The notes under the pieces: generated by a model
What the model was told of the DNA's origin: nothing
Database searches by the model: none
Seen by the model: only the letters and a program-made list of their open reading frames with translations
Translations under genes and position numbers: made by a program
From: Paramoeba atlantica
Lineage: Eukaryota; Protista; Discosea
Assembly: GCA_977017575.1 (NCBI GenBank)
Contig: CDRNVI010000052.1
Span: 62,001-126,000 of the forward strand
Reading direction: 5' to 3'
Length of the DNA stretch: 64,000 nucleotides
Part shown: one piece after another, positions 24,494-30,460 of the stretch
Numbering within the stretch: position 1 is the stretch's first letter
Layout: each line of letters begins with the position of its first letter

Positions 24494-25063
24494 ATGCTTG
24501 GGAGTCATGGGGGGTGGCATCCCATGAGCATGGCCGACTTAGCTGGGATTCTACTACAGTATATTTTAGCATTGTTTTCTTGTGCCGTTATTTTTAAAAT
24601 GTCTTCTTTTACATTTAGTCCGCAACTAACACTGCGATCATTCAGCCGGCGCGTGTCGGCACAACGTCTTGCTGCAGAGGACGCTCCACCGATTGTTCGC
24701 CCTGGCAAAGTACGAGCGAACTTGCCCCAAGAGTACGATCTTTCCAGATTTGTTGAGCTCATTTCTAGTCCACATTCTTCTTGGAACGTTTCTTTGCCAG
24801 CGTGTGATTGGTATGGTGTTATTTGTGACAAGGCACGATACGTTACGGAGATGCAGTGGCGTAATTACAAACTTCTGGGATCACTCCGTTGGGATTTTTT
24901 ACCCAGAACGGTACTACATTTCAATGTGTGGGATAACAAGCTCAAAGGGACAATTCCATTCGACGCGATGCCACCACACCTTCGTAGTCTTCGTGTACAG
25001 TGTAACCTTTTTACAGGCCAGCCGGATTTAAGTCATTTGCTACGCAAATTGATCATACTTGAT
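24494..25063 (+). pseudogene. LRR protein gene, 5' part, interrupted by retrotransposon (likely start 24599)
   Basis: SWNVSLPACDWYGVICD cap and LRRs ending ...LSHLLRKLIILD at 25063. Confidence 0.85.
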
Positions 25064-25089
25064 AAAGATACAGTTTCTGTACCTTGTTG
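25062..25089 (+). other. Spliced-leader (mini-exon) remnant, about nt 12/14-39
   Basis: GATACAGTTTCTGTAC (25067-25082) is identical to nt 17-32 of the Trypanosoma cruzi SL; TTG falls at SL positions 37-39; not followed by a GT donor. Confidence 0.8.
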
Positions 25090-28000
25090 ATTTGTACTAA
25101 CTGTTATCCTCCCCTACTGGGGCATGGCACTTCCCCCCTCCACCTCTGCCCCCCAAGCGCAAAGCGACGTCCCTCGAGGATCTGCTGGCGCAAAATCATC
25201 GCGTAAGCACAGCTTCCACTTCACTCAGCAGCGCGCAATACCGATTAAAATCAGACACTCGACTTCCTCGCTTTGGATATACTTCTCCGATATTCACGCG
25301 GCGGCCTCCTTCCTTACTGAAAAGAAACACTTTAATACAGAAATCACAGCGGAGCTTTCCTTGGCACGCACTTTGGATACTGGAGCGAAGAGAACCGATG
25401 GTATTCTAATCGAGAAATGTACCTTACAAGAAGTGATGGACGAAGAAGCTTGTGAACACTTTGTGTTCAAAGAAACTGCGCCGCCCCACCGCATTTTTCG
25501 ACACGCCAGCTGGACCGCGGCGCACGCAGACGAAGTCCTGAATCTCAGCCAACAATACTCTTGCCCTGGCACACTCGGTAGGGCGATTAAGAAGAAACTG
25601 GCTGGTCACGATATCCCAGGATTGGCATCCTTCGACATAACCCACGTATCGCAGAGGGAACAGACGTCCGACGAAATCCCTTGGGAAAATCCCAAGATCT
25701 CGTATGATGAGCCACTCGCAATTCGCGCGCCGAGGCAACCGAATGATTCTCGAGGAACACGGTCGTTACGTACGCAGCCGTGCGCGCACCGATGCCTAAA
25801 CAAACTAACATGTCTCCATCCATGCTGTAAAGTGGGCATTGAATCCGAACCCATTCCCGACCCTGCCTCCGATCCGAACGCGCTCCAGCTCGGTGAAGCA
25901 GGTTCCATGGTTGACGCTTCGCCACATTCAACAGCGTCCAGACGACCTGAGTCCACGCGTTCGCAGCCGTGCGCACACCGATGCCTAAGCAAACGAACAT
26001 GTCTACATCCGTGCTGTAAAGTGGGCATTGAACCCGAGCCTATTACCGACCCTGCCTCCGATCTGAATGCTCGTCAGCTCGTTGAAGCGGCTCCTACTGC
26101 TCTAGTAGCAGTGCAGCAAACAGCCTCCAGACCTGGGTATACGCTCTCACAGCCCTGCGCGTATCGATGTCTAAACAAACTAACATGCCTTCACCCATGT
26201 TGCAAAATAGGCGGTGAATGTGATCCGGCCTCTCAAGCAGGCACGCACCGACCCACGGGAACGATTCAGAGTCCCCACACCGACTCGACACAACTACGAG
26301 ATGAGCCACACCAGACTATGTACAGCACAACAAGGCGGCCATGCAAGCATGTCTGTCGGGACAAACAGAATTGCAAACATGGATGTTGCAAAGTTGGCGT
26401 GCTGGTCGATAGTTCTACACCCACCGACCCCAGTAGACCTGGAATTCCACATAATGAAACCTATGTTGCCTCCACTCGTGATCTGCACGCGCAGCACATA
26501 CAGCCAACATCTGCAAGGAAAATTTCTGACACATCTACGGTACCGGAGGGGGAAGAATCCTCGCACAGACCCTGCAAACACCTGTGCCACAACAAGGAAG
26601 AATGTAAGCACAAGTGTTGTAAGGAAGGTGTCCAAAGCCCAGTTAAAGATACCCGATCGGGCTCGAGTCGCTGGAGCCTGCGCAATCTTCTTTCATGGGG
26701 CTTCACCACAGGGAGCACGCGTACCAACGAAAACACAGCCCCTGCACGCACAAGGGATGGCCATGCAACCGGATCCGCAGCGCAACGTTACCCCGAGACG
26801 CACAGGAACATGCCACAGGACCAACAGCAAGCCGAAACGACCGCACATCACACACAGGCCCGAATAGATGTGATTGAAGAAACCGAGACACAGGTGCAGG
26901 ATACAACACAGCAGGATTTACCACATCATGACACGCAACCAAATAGTATACCGAATGTACGCACGATTCTGCAATCACAACGGATGAGAACGCGCAACGA
27001 TCGTTCAGGAAGCCCAGAAACTGCGGAAGACTTGCTGAGTACCTTGCGTACGATTGAAGGAGGGCGAGTAATGGCTAGTCTTTCTCATGAGCAATGGCAA
27101 CGCGCAATCAAGAAGTCGTTCGAACGATGTGAGAAATACCTTAAACCAGCTGCAACCCCAACTGAAGTACTGCGACATGCCGATTTGTTAACTGCCTGCA
27201 TAGCAGTCTCGGCTTATGAAATCGCGCGGGAGGCTGACCCAACGAAAGGATTCAAGCTACGCTCGACGACTGGCCACACCAAACGTGCTTCACGACCTCT
27301 CAGCTACGATCGCTCAGCAAAGGAACTTTCTGGACATATCCGCCAATTAAAACGTACCCTCTCTTACACACACGGCCGCTCGGAAAGAGATCGCCTGATA
27401 CGCAACATAAAAGAAGCCACGAAAGCCCGCAACCTCTACACAGAAGAAGCAAATCTCCTGCGACGTGAAAGGGAGAAAAGATGGGTGACGGACAGATTTC
27501 AACGGAACCCCTGGACGGCAGGAGGGGAATGCCTCGACAATAACGAGAAGATGCGAAAACAGCCAACGATTTTCCCGAATTGTCCACAGGCAGTTATTGA
27601 AACGTTCTTCAAGGACACACTAAGCATTGGCAACGAAACCCACACTCTACCCCCCACTGATCTTCTTGGCGCTGGAAACGAAAGCGAAATGAAGTGGGAA
27701 GATATTGACGTGCAAACCATAGCCGCGGCTATCTCCTCCAAGCGACCGTCCGCTGCACCAGGTCCTGACACCATAAGTAACGCCTTCCTCCGACGCTGCA
27801 CTGAGCTGTACCCCTTCATCGCCCAAGTATTCAACGACCTACTCAAACACCCCGTAGGTCCAACCCACTGGAAACAAGCGGTGACTCGACTCATCCACAA
27901 AGGGGGGGCTACGGATAAACTGTCGAACTGGCGCCCTATCAGCCTGACCAGCTGTCTGGGGAAGCTACTCCACTCAATCATAGGACACAAACTTCTGAGT

Positions 28001-30076
28001 CACGCTGTCAGCACAGGGATCATCGACACGACCATACAAAAAGGCTTTCTCCCCAATGTCAATGGAACCATCGAACACACGCAAGCGCTTTGTGAACTGC
28101 TGGATTTTCAGAGGCAGCACAAACGGCAATACTGCTTGGGTCAATTCGACCTGAAAAACGCCTTTGGTTCTCTTCCACACTCGATCCTCTTCCAAGTATT
28201 ACAATGGGCAAAGGTGTCGCCGATTATCATCGAATATGTTCACTCCCTCTATACCAGTGCTTCTCTCCGAGTCAAGTGTGCTGAGGGGTTGACTAACCAC
28301 ATTCCCGTTGAACGAGGCGTTCTTCAAGGCGACACCCTATCTCCTGTGCTATTCAACCTTGCGATGGAGGTAGTTTTAAGGTACCTTCGATCCAGCTTTC
28401 CAGGATATGGCATCACATGGGGCGGGCAAGAATCATTCCTTAAGGCGTTTGCGGACGACCTTGCCGTCATTACCAAATCACCCGAAGAAATGCAGCATGT
28501 TACTAACGCCCTGGTAAAGGTGCTCGCCAGATTAGGCATGCGGCTAAATGTACAGAAATGTCGGCTTCAGTATATGGCTGTAGCGGATGGAGGATACAAA
28601 ACCCACAGACCGCGCATCCGTGCCGGCGGCGAAAGCATACCCCACGTTTGCGACAAAGGCAGTCAGTTTCTGGGCATGACGCTAGCGCCTGGAGCCCAAC
28701 AAGGGAAAGTGTTGTTCAAGAGTCTCCGTACACAACTACGCCACTGGCTTACCAACGTATCTGAAAGTGCCATGGATACGCCCGCCCGCCTCTGGGTCTA
28801 CAATAACGTCATTATTTCCCGTCTACGCTACGTTCTGACGGTAAATCCGGGAATCACACTGAATTTCATCCTGCGGCTGCAAAAGCTTGCGACTACACAC
28901 ATTCGGAAATGGGTGAATATGGCCAAAACTGCAACCAGCGAACTTCTCTATTCTGAGCGGGGGTGGGCCTTAACTAGTTTCTCAAAGCTGTGGATACTCT
29001 GCACGAGTACACTGGTCGAGCAAATGCAGAAATCACGTGACCCGGCTGTGCAACAGGCTTTAAGACACCGCATCCGCAGGGAACTGCACAAGCGCTCAAC
29101 GGGACACGTCCAACCAGTAGTTGAACTGTACGACCGACGAGAAGACCGTGTGGCGACACGGCGGTTCATTGAGAGTGAATACGAGCGACACCTTTCCGAA
29201 TCCGTGCAACGACGGGCTCCCATAGCGGCACAGTGGTTCCGTATGGCCACTGAGGACGAACTTGCGAAAGACTTTGCTGCTGCGGTATGTAACATCAACA
29301 GTGAGGCACTCTCCCGGTTTACTGCATCTGTGTTGACCCAAACACCACTACCTACTCGTTCAGCACTGCGTCGTTGGGGTCTAAGTACGCACACGGACAC
29401 AAAGTGTCCCATTTGCAAAGAGGAGGTGCAGACAGTTCGACATGTCCTCACAGGGTGCAAGGTGGCCCTTGAACAGGGCCGCTACACGTTCCGCCATGAT
29501 CTTATACTCCACGCTATCGCAGATGCCGTAAGAGCATCCCCAGAAACAGCGCAGTACCACTTTGATCTTTCTCTTTACCGAAACCCCCCAACATGGCTAA
29601 GTCAACAGGACACGGCCCTTAGACCTGATGGGTGGATCAAGCTACATAATGGTACTGAGTTCATACTTGAGCTCACTTCTCCGTGGGAGGAAAACTTTTT
29701 ATCCTCACATGAGCGGAAAGTGCGGAAGTACGGGAATCTGTTTCTCGAAAGGAAAATGACTAACCCGGCAACCTTTCTTCTTGTCATCGAAGTGGGGGCC
29801 AGAGGGAAGCTCAACTCCTCTACGCGAGCGCTCAACTCACTTTTCGGAGGTAACAAGGCCACCGCCTCGCAATGTCGACAGAAGCTTGTCAAAAGAGCAA
29901 TACGAGGAAGTTTCGCGATTTTTCAAAACCGCGATAACCCGAGCTGGACGGAAGCCAGCATATAGCGATGATGAAAAGCTTAAGGGAAACCCGTTTTGTG
30001 CGGGGTTTATGCATGATCTACGTGTATTTCTCTTAGGTGACAATCTCTGCAGTCATACTGCATGATAAACAAAATA
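25064..30076 (+). mobile_element. Full-length RLE-type non-LTR retrotransposon (R2 group, HERO/NeSL/R4-like)
   Basis: Single intact ORF, about 110-nt 3' UTR ending tgataaacaaaata; the flanks rejoin into an in-frame LRR; no clear TSD. Confidence 0.9.
25124..29965 (+). CDS. Retrotransposon ORF: 5 Cys/His zinc fingers + RT + CCHC knuckle + restriction-like endonuclease
   Basis: SAAPGPDTI, NWRPISLTS, QKGFLP, FDLKNAFGS, GVLQGDTLSPVLFNL, AFADDL, FLG; CPICKEEVQTVRHVLTGC; GRYTFRHD; RPDG..ELTSPWE..KVRKY. Confidence 0.95.
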   Translation: MALPPSTSAPQAQSDVPRGSAGAKSSRKHSFHFTQQRAIPIKIRHSTSSLWIYFSDIHAAASFLTEKKHFNTEITAELSLARTLDTGAKRTDGILIEKCTLQEVMDEEACEHFVFKETAPPHRIFRHASWTAAHADEVLNLSQQYSCPGTLGRAIKKKLAGHDIPGLASFDITHVSQREQTSDEIPWENPKISYDEPLAIRAPRQPNDSRGTRSLRTQPCAHRCLNKLTCLHPCCKVGIESEPIPDPASDPNALQLGEAGSMVDASPHSTASRRPESTRSQPCAHRCLSKRTCLHPCCKVGIEPEPITDPASDLNARQLVEAAPTALVAVQQTASRPGYTLSQPCAYRCLNKLTCLHPCCKIGGECDPASQAGTHRPTGTIQSPHTDSTQLRDEPHQTMYSTTRRPCKHVCRDKQNCKHGCCKVGVLVDSSTPTDPSRPGIPHNETYVASTRDLHAQHIQPTSARKISDTSTVPEGEESSHRPCKHLCHNKEECKHKCCKEGVQSPVKDTRSGSSRWSLRNLLSWGFTTGSTRTNENTAPARTRDGHATGSAAQRYPETHRNMPQDQQQAETTAHHTQARIDVIEETETQVQDTTQQDLPHHDTQPNSIPNVRTILQSQRMRTRNDRSGSPETAEDLLSTLRTIEGGRVMASLSHEQWQRAIKKSFERCEKYLKPAATPTEVLRHADLLTACIAVSAYEIAREADPTKGFKLRSTTGHTKRASRPLSYDRSAKELSGHIRQLKRTLSYTHGRSERDRLIRNIKEATKARNLYTEEANLLRREREKRWVTDRFQRNPWTAGGECLDNNEKMRKQPTIFPNCPQAVIETFFKDTLSIGNETHTLPPTDLLGAGNESEMKWEDIDVQTIAAAISSKRPSAAPGPDTISNAFLRRCTELYPFIAQVFNDLLKHPVGPTHWKQAVTRLIHKGGATDKLSNWRPISLTSCLGKLLHSIIGHKLLSHAVSTGIIDTTIQKGFLPNVNGTIEHTQALCELLDFQRQHKRQYCLGQFDLKNAFGSLPHSILFQVLQWAKVSPIIIEYVHSLYTSASLRVKCAEGLTNHIPVERGVLQGDTLSPVLFNLAMEVVLRYLRSSFPGYGITWGGQESFLKAFADDLAVITKSPEEMQHVTNALVKVLARLGMRLNVQKCRLQYMAVADGGYKTHRPRIRAGGESIPHVCDKGSQFLGMTLAPGAQQGKVLFKSLRTQLRHWLTNVSESAMDTPARLWVYNNVIISRLRYVLTVNPGITLNFILRLQKLATTHIRKWVNMAKTATSELLYSERGWALTSFSKLWILCTSTLVEQMQKSRDPAVQQALRHRIRRELHKRSTGHVQPVVELYDRREDRVATRRFIESEYERHLSESVQRRAPIAAQWFRMATEDELAKDFAAAVCNINSEALSRFTASVLTQTPLPTRSALRRWGLSTHTDTKCPICKEEVQTVRHVLTGCKVALEQGRYTFRHDLILHAIADAVRASPETAQYHFDLSLYRNPPTWLSQQDTALRPDGWIKLHNGTEFILELTSPWEENFLSSHERKVRKYGNLFLERKMTNPATFLLVIEVGARGKLNSSTRALNSLFGGNKATASQCRQKLVKRAIRGSFAIFQNRDNPSWTEASI

Positions 30077-30460
30077 CTACATACCAACCGATTTGATGGT
30101 ACTGTAAATATTTCTCATCTGCCACCTAACTTGCGGGATTTAGACATTCATGGCAATAATTTTTCTGGTAAGCTCGACATCACACGGTTGCCACGAAAGA
30201 TGACTTACGTAAATTTCTCGCACAATCGATTCACAGGCCCGCTTCACCTACATCAACTGCCCACATCACTTTTAGTGCTTGACGCAAAAAATAATCTATT
30301 CTCTGGGTTAGTGAAGTTTGACGGTCTTCCTGTTTCATTGCGCTCGTTAAGCCTAGAAAACAATAAGAAGCTTTCCGGTGAATTTAACAAGTCTGATCTT
30401 TCGGAGGATTATAATTTTATTAGTGTAGGTGGTACTGGGATTATAGAATTGGGTCGCTAA
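30077..30460 (+). pseudogene. LRR protein gene, 3' part (continuation of 24494-25063)
   Basis: LHTNRFDGTVNISHLPPNLRDLDIHGNNFSG...; joining 25063 to 30077 restores LIILD-LHTN (LxxLxLxxN). Confidence 0.85.

Follow-up and report, generated by a model that had tools for sequence, protein, structure and literature searches.

Why does a mobile element carry, at the very start of its DNA, a piece of the spliced leader (SL) of its host? The question is raised by a leucine-rich repeat (LRR) gene in a 64,000-nucleotide stretch of the Paramoeba atlantica assembly GCA_977017575.1 (contig CDRNVI010000052.1, positions 62,001 to 126,000), called the window hereafter. An earlier note, made from the letters of the window, had proposed that this gene is broken by a retrotransposon whose 5' end is a copied SL. 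The head of the element is a copy of the host SL, and its sequence indicates an SL-carrying RNA as the source. The explanation that we favour, with moderate confidence, is a recent and still polymorphic insertion of an autonomous retrotransposon lacking long terminal repeats (a non-LTR element) of the R2/CRE type, whose RNA intermediate bore the host SL.

The insertion and its leader-derived head

At the insertion point the window reads ...CTTGAT|AAAGATACAGTTTCTGTACCTTGTTG, followed by the 34-nucleotide (nt) leader of the element (25090-25123) and an ATG at 25124. Re-reading of the window agreed with the earlier description of the SL remnant, the 34-nt leader, the start codon and the broken LRR frame. 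The host SL RNA genes form tandem arrays, in which a 38-nt exon (L066:1479-1516) is followed by the intron start GTATGAGAAGC. Recognised by GTATGAGAAGC directly after the exon end CCTTGTTG, these genes amount to 41 exact copies in the assembly, mainly on C97 and C107 with a tandem spacing of about 2.56 kb. In an environmental contig the SL exon and the intron start are identical but the sequence upstream is unrelated, which sets the 5' end of the exon at AAC. Window positions 25061-25089 are identical to nt 10-38 of this exon; the presence of the remnant in the host SL, on which the earlier proposal depended, was thus found. The relic ends at the last base of the exon and is followed by ATTTG, not by the SL intron, as had been noticed before. 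It contains two AG dinucleotides (25066-67 and 25072-73) and none occurs in 25090-25123 up to the ATG, again in agreement with the first reading. Across the 45.7-Mb assembly, the 12-mer SL core CAGTTTCTGTAC occurs at 846 sites, against 9 for the reversed control; SL genes account for a minority of the 846. In the window, the 19-mer CAGTTTCTGTACCTTGTTG is present once, where 0.03 occurrences are expected.

The same LRR gene is present without the element, at 99-100% identity, as an empty allele (C8, L084) that reads ...CATACTTGAT|CTACATACC... This allele has no SL-like sequence at the insertion point and encodes an intact LRR protein of 307 amino acids (aa) (L084:1325-2248). The comparison confirmed that the leader sequence was not part of the uninterrupted gene, and that an intact retrotransposon, with an open reading frame (ORF) of 1613 aa, had split it. 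The sequence of the locus upstream of ATAAAG is CTTGAT, where a leader in register would have AACTTTAACG. The insert comprises 25064-30076 (5013 bp) and is blunt, with neither a target duplication nor a deletion; this is the only copy that could be compared with an empty site. Its start, previously put at 25062, is corrected to 25064, GAT (25061-25063) being target sequence. At the 5' joint there is accordingly a 3-nt overlap, in which the last target bases are also SL nt 10-12. The interrupted LRR frame (24494-25090) extends past the insertion point and terminates inside the element at a stop (25088-25090), and a second LRR frame occupies 30062-30460.

The two alleles were also sought in public reads, as contigs assembled from four runs, none of them proven RNA. 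These contain the joint 25063->30077, skipping the 5013 bp, and two runs also hold contigs across the filled junctions. Since the filled and the empty alleles are both present in two DNA runs, the insertion is polymorphic or heterozygous, hence young.

The features of the locus are as follows.

24494-25063, plus strand: 5' part of the interrupted LRR gene (ORF list, LRRNT_2 match, intact allele)
25061-25063, plus strand: GAT, the last three target bases, equal to SL nt 10-12; microhomology of the 5' junction (empty-site alignment, read joint)
25064-25089, plus strand: SL-derived head, SL exon nt 13-38 (nt 10-38 with the overlap), by identity to L066:1479-1516
25090-25093, plus strand: linker ATTT, a suffix of the 17-19-nt linker of sister copies (head alignment)
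25094-25108, plus strand: conserved box GTACTAACTGTTATC of the 5' untranslated region (UTR), partly complementary to SL nt 16-31 (kept across subfamilies; predicted hairpin)
25111-25122, plus strand: small hairpin CCCC-TACT-GGGG before the start codon (head alignment, folding)
25124-29965, plus strand: single intact ORF of 1613 aa (ORF list, translation)
25778-26628, plus strand: five Cys-rich repeats of the C-x3-C-x5-C-x3-CC type, putatively nucleic-acid-binding (translation; no Pfam match)
27896-28678, plus strand: reverse transcriptase, aa 925-1185 (Pfam RVT_1, E 5e-31; PDB matches to R2 and L1 ORF2)
29405-29806, plus strand: CCHC knuckle and predicted PD-(D/E)XK restriction-like endonuclease (RLE) (conserved motifs, AlphaFold2 model, Foldseek)
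30054-30066, plus strand: conserved 3' terminal motif CATACTGCATGAT (comparison of the 3' ends of copies)
30067-30076, plus strand: A-rich tail AAACAAAATA (same comparison)
30077-30460, plus strand: 3' part of the interrupted LRR gene (LRR matches, empty-allele alignment)

The reverse transcriptase domain matched R2 and L1 ORF2 in the PDB with E values of 1e-27 to 3e-31. In the C-terminal part, 13 homologues retain the CCHC, RHD, RPD, ELT and K..KY motifs, and the last 254 residues were modelled by AlphaFold with a pLDDT of 81. When the endonuclease model was submitted to Foldseek, the top seven matches were all R2 proteins (E 5e-7 to 5e-4), PD-(D/E)XK nucleases coming next, and R2 proteins also gave the best alignment over the whole stretch from the reverse transcriptase to the C terminus. 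A Pfam scan of the ORF gave no match to exo_endo_phos, the apurinic/apyrimidinic endonuclease (APE) family. Because an RVT_1 domain is thus combined with a CCHC/RLE fold and no APE, the element is, as judged by its motifs and modelled fold, an RLE-bearing non-LTR retrotransposon of the R2/CRE kind. It also bears the marks of target-primed reverse transcription, namely an A-rich 3' end, 5'-truncated copies and variable 5' junctions. Sister copies end in AAACAAAA or in pure A runs of 10-26, the window copy having AAACAAAA with an added TA. An Rfam search at E <= 10 over 24900-25600 gave no ribozyme match, although a ribozyme of an undescribed kind would escape such a search.

Some observations concern the target. 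The upstream flank TCATACTTGAT (25051-25063) resembles the 3' end of the element, TCATACTGCATGAT (30053-30066; p 0.007 vs background), with TCATACT..TGAT in both. Homology between flank and 3' end was considered as a general feature and rejected: it is not general over 27 insertions and is probably due to chance. Another copy of the same young subfamily (L076, G000:C20:445471) is followed by LRR coding sequence (L-A-N-N-S-F-S-G-A-L-D-L-S-Q-L-P), in the same repeat phase as that after 30077 in the window (L-H-T-N-R-F-D-G). An LRR-like 5' flank also precedes a copy of the short interspersed element (SINE)-like family described below (L052/L061). The element family may prefer the LRR gene family as a target.

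The element family, its probable SINE-like partner and the start of their heads

At least 12 copies of the element are 96-100% identical. Identity among the subfamilies sampled ranges from 70 to 99%, and for further subfamilies it is 68-78% within the first 400 bases. Every full-length head examined consists of the leader, a linker of 0-19 nt, the box GTACTAACTGTTATC, the small hairpin and the ATG. The hairpin at the start codon is kept in subfamilies in which its sequence differs (CTC/GAG in one). In essentially all sampled subfamilies the SL part is identical to that of the host despite a neighbouring sequence of only 70-78% identity; a single substitution is shared by three duplicate loci of one insertion. 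As a separate observation, the 3' part of the element, ending in 23-25 A, occurs four times with a period of 5370 bp within a larger tandem repeat in G000:C44:23237-39656 (L078-L081).

A second, noncoding family of about 700 nt is present at about 200 sites genome-wide (L061-L070; for example G000:C2:38803, C3:18111 and C3:71398). Its head is SL nt 11-38, followed directly by GTACATTTT, which starts with GTAC, and by a strong hairpin (CCCGGAAACGGGC...). Its 3' terminus, GCATGATAAACAAA(A), is the same as that of the autonomous element, the GCATGAT part of CATACTGCATGAT and the start of the A-rich tail being common to both. This family is probably a non-autonomous, SINE-like partner of the element. 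Furthermore, unrelated families in the genome carry near-complete leaders that begin at nt 1-5, usually after A runs. Four features together argue for an SL-bearing RNA as the template: a junction placed exactly where the exon ends, a tail rich in A, identity of the leader with that of the host even in diverged subfamilies, and near-complete leaders on unrelated families.

We considered the possibility that the leader is acquired during reverse transcription, the enzyme reaching the 5' end of an element RNA that is unspliced and then switching to the end of an SL-exon RNA, as in mammalian U6/L1 chimeras. R2-type enzymes are able to jump between templates. The shorter linkers of two sub-lineages are without exception suffixes of the long one, and SL nt 38 is always at their left edge, which suggests that the leader was joined repeatedly as a unit; such variants are what jumps from 5'-shortened UTRs would give, joined exactly at SL nt 38 with no preceding AG. 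Partial SL duplications upstream of some heads (L007, L010, L037, L040 and L055) could also be read as repeated jumps. Yet a jump onto the SL RNA should bring the intron along, and none was seen. In addition, the free SL exon is a scarce splicing intermediate, and the AG-specific nested junctions described below are better explained by real splicing. We consider this route improbable.

The position at which heads begin within the leader was compared over 50 independent SL sites from the loci retrieved, 27 of them belonging to this family and its SINE and 23 to other families. Heads of the element and the SINE start at nt 8-23, most often at nt 11 (12/27), and none starts at nt 1-7. In contrast, 21 of the 23 heads of other retroelement families, which mostly stand behind A runs, start at nt 1-7, 20 of them at nt 1-5 (Fisher p = 4e-12). 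As the nt-11 start is specific to the element and its SINE, the loss of the first ~10 leader bases is a property of the element's machinery. Within the leader, AT first appears at nt 11-12, and the simplest reading of the nt-11 start is that a target end finishing in AT is joined at the first matching site of the complementary DNA (cDNA). Alternatively, the start may reflect a stop or a cut defined by the protein, or an RNA beginning at nt 11. A shorter SL variant starting with AACGAT was also envisaged to explain this start; it was rejected, since the sequence, met with in read contigs, is present at one locus only (two haplotigs), which is not an SL gene.

In the mechanism that we propose, the element would be transcribed as part of host polycistronic units and, as with an mRNA, would undergo trans-splicing. 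The encoded protein would nick the target and reverse-transcribe the RNA from the A-rich 3' end into the leader, and the upstream DNA end would then be joined at a short homology inside the leader, as in this class of endonucleases. With the first AT of the leader at nt 11-12, the first ~10 leader bases would be lost.

Other features of the heads were observed. At the C1 and C2 sites (L035-L058), near-complete leaders of other families stand directly after A runs. Of 11 heads starting at nt 3, eight are preceded by T and not by the A of the leader (binomial p 0.009); the reverse transcriptase could have misread the modified bases near the cap. In L007, L010, L026, L037, L040 and L055, short pieces of the leader 5' part recur just upstream of a full head (ATAAAGAT three times, nt 16-30 three times and nt 3-14 twice), a pattern that resembles serial template jumping, or slippage, at the 5' junction. 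Finally, G000:C42:50244 and C77:21501 represent one locus with leader nt 7-38 in the middle of the sequence. An 825-nt contig of this locus in run X1 had a depth of about 1180, the single-copy flanks having 3-5; provided that X1 is RNA, the sequence is a very abundant transcript bearing an internal leader relic.

The heads could also stem from the SL genes themselves. The earlier note had offered, as a second model, an SL-gene-targeting element with sources in SL RNA genes, where it would be co-transcribed with the exon, the window copy being an off-target insertion. SLACS and CZAR do insert in SL RNA genes, and their endonuclease class, like that of CRE, is the same as in the window element. 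Moreover, the SL array at G000:C74:104195-121538 has spacings of 2.7, 7.3 and 7.3 kb; compared with the usual ~2.56 kb (~2.6 kb), the 7.3-kb spacing points to inserts of about 4.7 kb in or between the SL genes of C74. The C74 region is, however, absent among the matches to the 5' or 3' ends of the element family. No SL gene is interrupted before nt 11, none of the ~27 heads lies in an SL gene or has SL-promoter sequence upstream, and none of 12 subfamily 3' ends or of five SINE 3' ends adjoins SL gene sequence. What follows the relic is the element rather than the intron. Transcription of SLACS starts at SL +1, so that its 5' end carries SL nt 1-11 (PMC3447711), whereas the heads described here carry nt 11-38. 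This second model is disfavoured by these counts and appears very improbable.

Nested relics and the upkeep of the head

If genomic copies headed by the SL were transcribed and trans-spliced again, a new leader should be found joined to an older one. A genome-wide search for a leader end followed within 8 bases by relic nt 23-32 gave 23 sites. SL nt 38 was joined to relic nt 23, just after AG22, in 14/23 and to relic nt 17, just after AG16, in 2/23; the members include one copy of a CRE-like subfamily (C34) and one SINE copy (C37). Leaders are triply nested at three sites (G000:C20:57439, C35:33556 and C63:378806). In these triple nests a leader end is followed by relic nt 23-38 and then by relic nt 29-38, the innermost joint, before TACC, not being behind an AG. 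The AG-specific nested junctions indicate that SL-headed copies have been transcribed, trans-spliced at the relic and reinserted. The idea that the AGs of the relic could act as the next acceptor therefore holds for the 14 AG22 and two AG16 junctions elsewhere in the genome, but not as the usual route, nested relics making up ~2% of SL sites. Similarly, the first model of the earlier note stands in that an SL-bearing RNA template fits best; the 'self-renewing' cycle of the note is hypothetical.

The favoured explanation has to be weighed against a series of findings that speak against it. The first is the nt-11 start itself, with 0/27 element and SINE heads at nt 1-7 vs 21/23 in other families; none of the sampled element or SINE copies proves that the template RNA had nt 1-10. 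Nested relics are rare and the window copy has a single one, which argues that recycling through relic AGs is not the main route. None of the existing SL/linker junctions has an AG in front of it. Canonical splicing therefore cannot restore the junction of a headed copy, and yet the SL head and a homologous linker persisted through a long diversification of the family. An SL-less copy behind T7-AG (L028) was tried as the source and rejected, since the daughters that it predicts are absent. Lastly, X1, which is the oldest run and possibly RNA, contains the empty form alone, with zero coverage of the element body.

Several of these findings would be expected if SL nt 11-38, the linker and the anti-SL box formed an inherited cis-acting 5' module, captured once from a trans-spliced RNA or an SL-gene target. 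The module would be transcribed from the DNA copy in each cycle, and the element protein, in place of renewed trans-splicing, would set the 5' end, perhaps by halting cDNA synthesis or by cutting within the leader, close to where SLACS/CZAR/CRE enter SL genes. The confinement of the nt-11 start to the element and its SINE, and the lack of heads reaching nt 1-7, agree with such a module. So do the SINE, whose SL head and 3' motif are those of the element, as recognition of both ends would predict, the single relic as the rule, the linker homologous across subfamilies and the lack of an AG at the SL/linker junction. SLACS and CZAR insert between SL nt 11 and 12 (PMC5814959).

Also in favour of the module, the box complementary to SL nt 16-31 has been conserved, and nearly all subfamilies have a predicted hairpin between box and SL, the pairs differing in part. 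This pairing is kept as a lead, the energies of the SL/box duplex being only marginally better than those of shuffles (p 0.03-0.27), which counts against the module. The SL part has no subfamily-specific substitutions, even at unpaired positions, and renewal from host RNA fits better with this. AG22 nests in the element family and the SINE show the use of trans-spliced RNAs in at least some cases, unrelated families carry SL heads as well, and no ribozyme family was matched. On the other side, if the leaders are aligned at their 3' ends, the entry site of SLACS/CZAR falls at nt 10/11 of the 38-nt leader; this may or may not be coincidence. Altogether, we regard an inherited module as rather unlikely. 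A form of it that we entertain tentatively is that the element lineage and its SINE adopted the host SL, from a trans-spliced RNA, as their own 5' terminal module, paired to the anti-leader box and trimmed to nt 11 by the element's machinery, about where the SL-gene-specific relatives cut the leader gene.

To return to an RNA intermediate bearing the host SL, re-transcribed genomic copies can apparently be re-spliced at their own relic AGs, which happens but is rare, and most copies would probably come from a few source copies, unless the head is also inherited as a part of the element. Possible routes for the upkeep of the head thus include few source copies, an inherited head with protein-defined trimming, and template jumps.

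Comparison with known systems

The 5' ends of kinetoplastid retrotransposons are thought to be solved in two ways, by an internal promoter and ribozyme (ingi/L1Tc) or by residence in SL genes (SLACS/CZAR/CRE). If the favoured explanation is true, a dispersed RLE-bearing family using the ordinary trans-spliced mRNA form would represent a third solution. A literature search found no report of SL-headed retrotransposons in kinetoplastids, or of such a 5' strategy for their mobile elements. Two metagenome contigs with relatives of the element (L089 and L090) have no kinetoplastid leader, and a scan of metagenome contigs for leader plus box gave no match. Each insertion would be tagged with a DNA record of RNA processing, including splice junctions and re-splicing at relic AGs, and SL-gene-specific CRE elements would be linked to non-specific relatives. 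With its polymorphic insertion and intact ORF, the family may still be active and thereby open to experiment. The disruption of LRR gene family members bears on gene-family turnover in a free-living trypanosome relative. Should the more doubtful idea of an adopted leader module hold, a kinetoplastid-type genome would be the second place, after dinoflagellates, with RNA-recycled leader relics, and the first with mobile elements dependent on them.

SLACS, CZAR, CRE1 and CRE2 resemble the window element in having a single large ORF, a reverse transcriptase with a C-terminal RLE, Cys-rich or zinc-finger motifs, internal repeats, a 3' end that is A-rich or poly(A), and a link to the SL (PMC12278014). 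In contrast, CRE-clade elements are confined to SL RNA genes, duplicate their target and rely on the SL promoter for transcription (PMC5814959, PMC3447711, PMC12278014), whereas the window family is dispersed over LRR genes and other sites, with no duplication in this copy. The parts of the leader carried are complementary, SL nt 1-11 in the CRE clade and nt 11-38, joined at the exon 3' end, here. The likeness is one of domains and features.

Animal R2 elements are specific for 28S rDNA, are co-transcribed with the rRNA and are released by a ribozyme like that of hepatitis delta virus (HDV). They provide the best sequence and fold matches for the reverse transcriptase and the CCHC/RLE region, and are alike in near-blunt strand cleavage and in forming the 5' junction by short homology. 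They differ by their HDV-like ribozyme, for which there is no match here, and by their N-terminal module.

The SL relics of dinoflagellates are also similar, with complete or truncated leader DNA 5' of retrocopies and nests formed via an AG inside the old leader (PMC11453091, PMC5585692). In dinoflagellates, however, it is host genes that are tagged, and relics are commonly recycled, while the tagged sequences classified here are retrotransposons and a SINE of a kinetoplastid-type genome, and nesting is rare. Finally, Pr77 of ingi/L1Tc is comparable as a conserved 5' module common to autonomous and non-autonomous partners. Pr77 acts as an internal promoter and ribozyme and yields unspliced, leaderless RNAs (PMC1874656, PMC5814959), whereas in the window family the 5' module is the leader itself.

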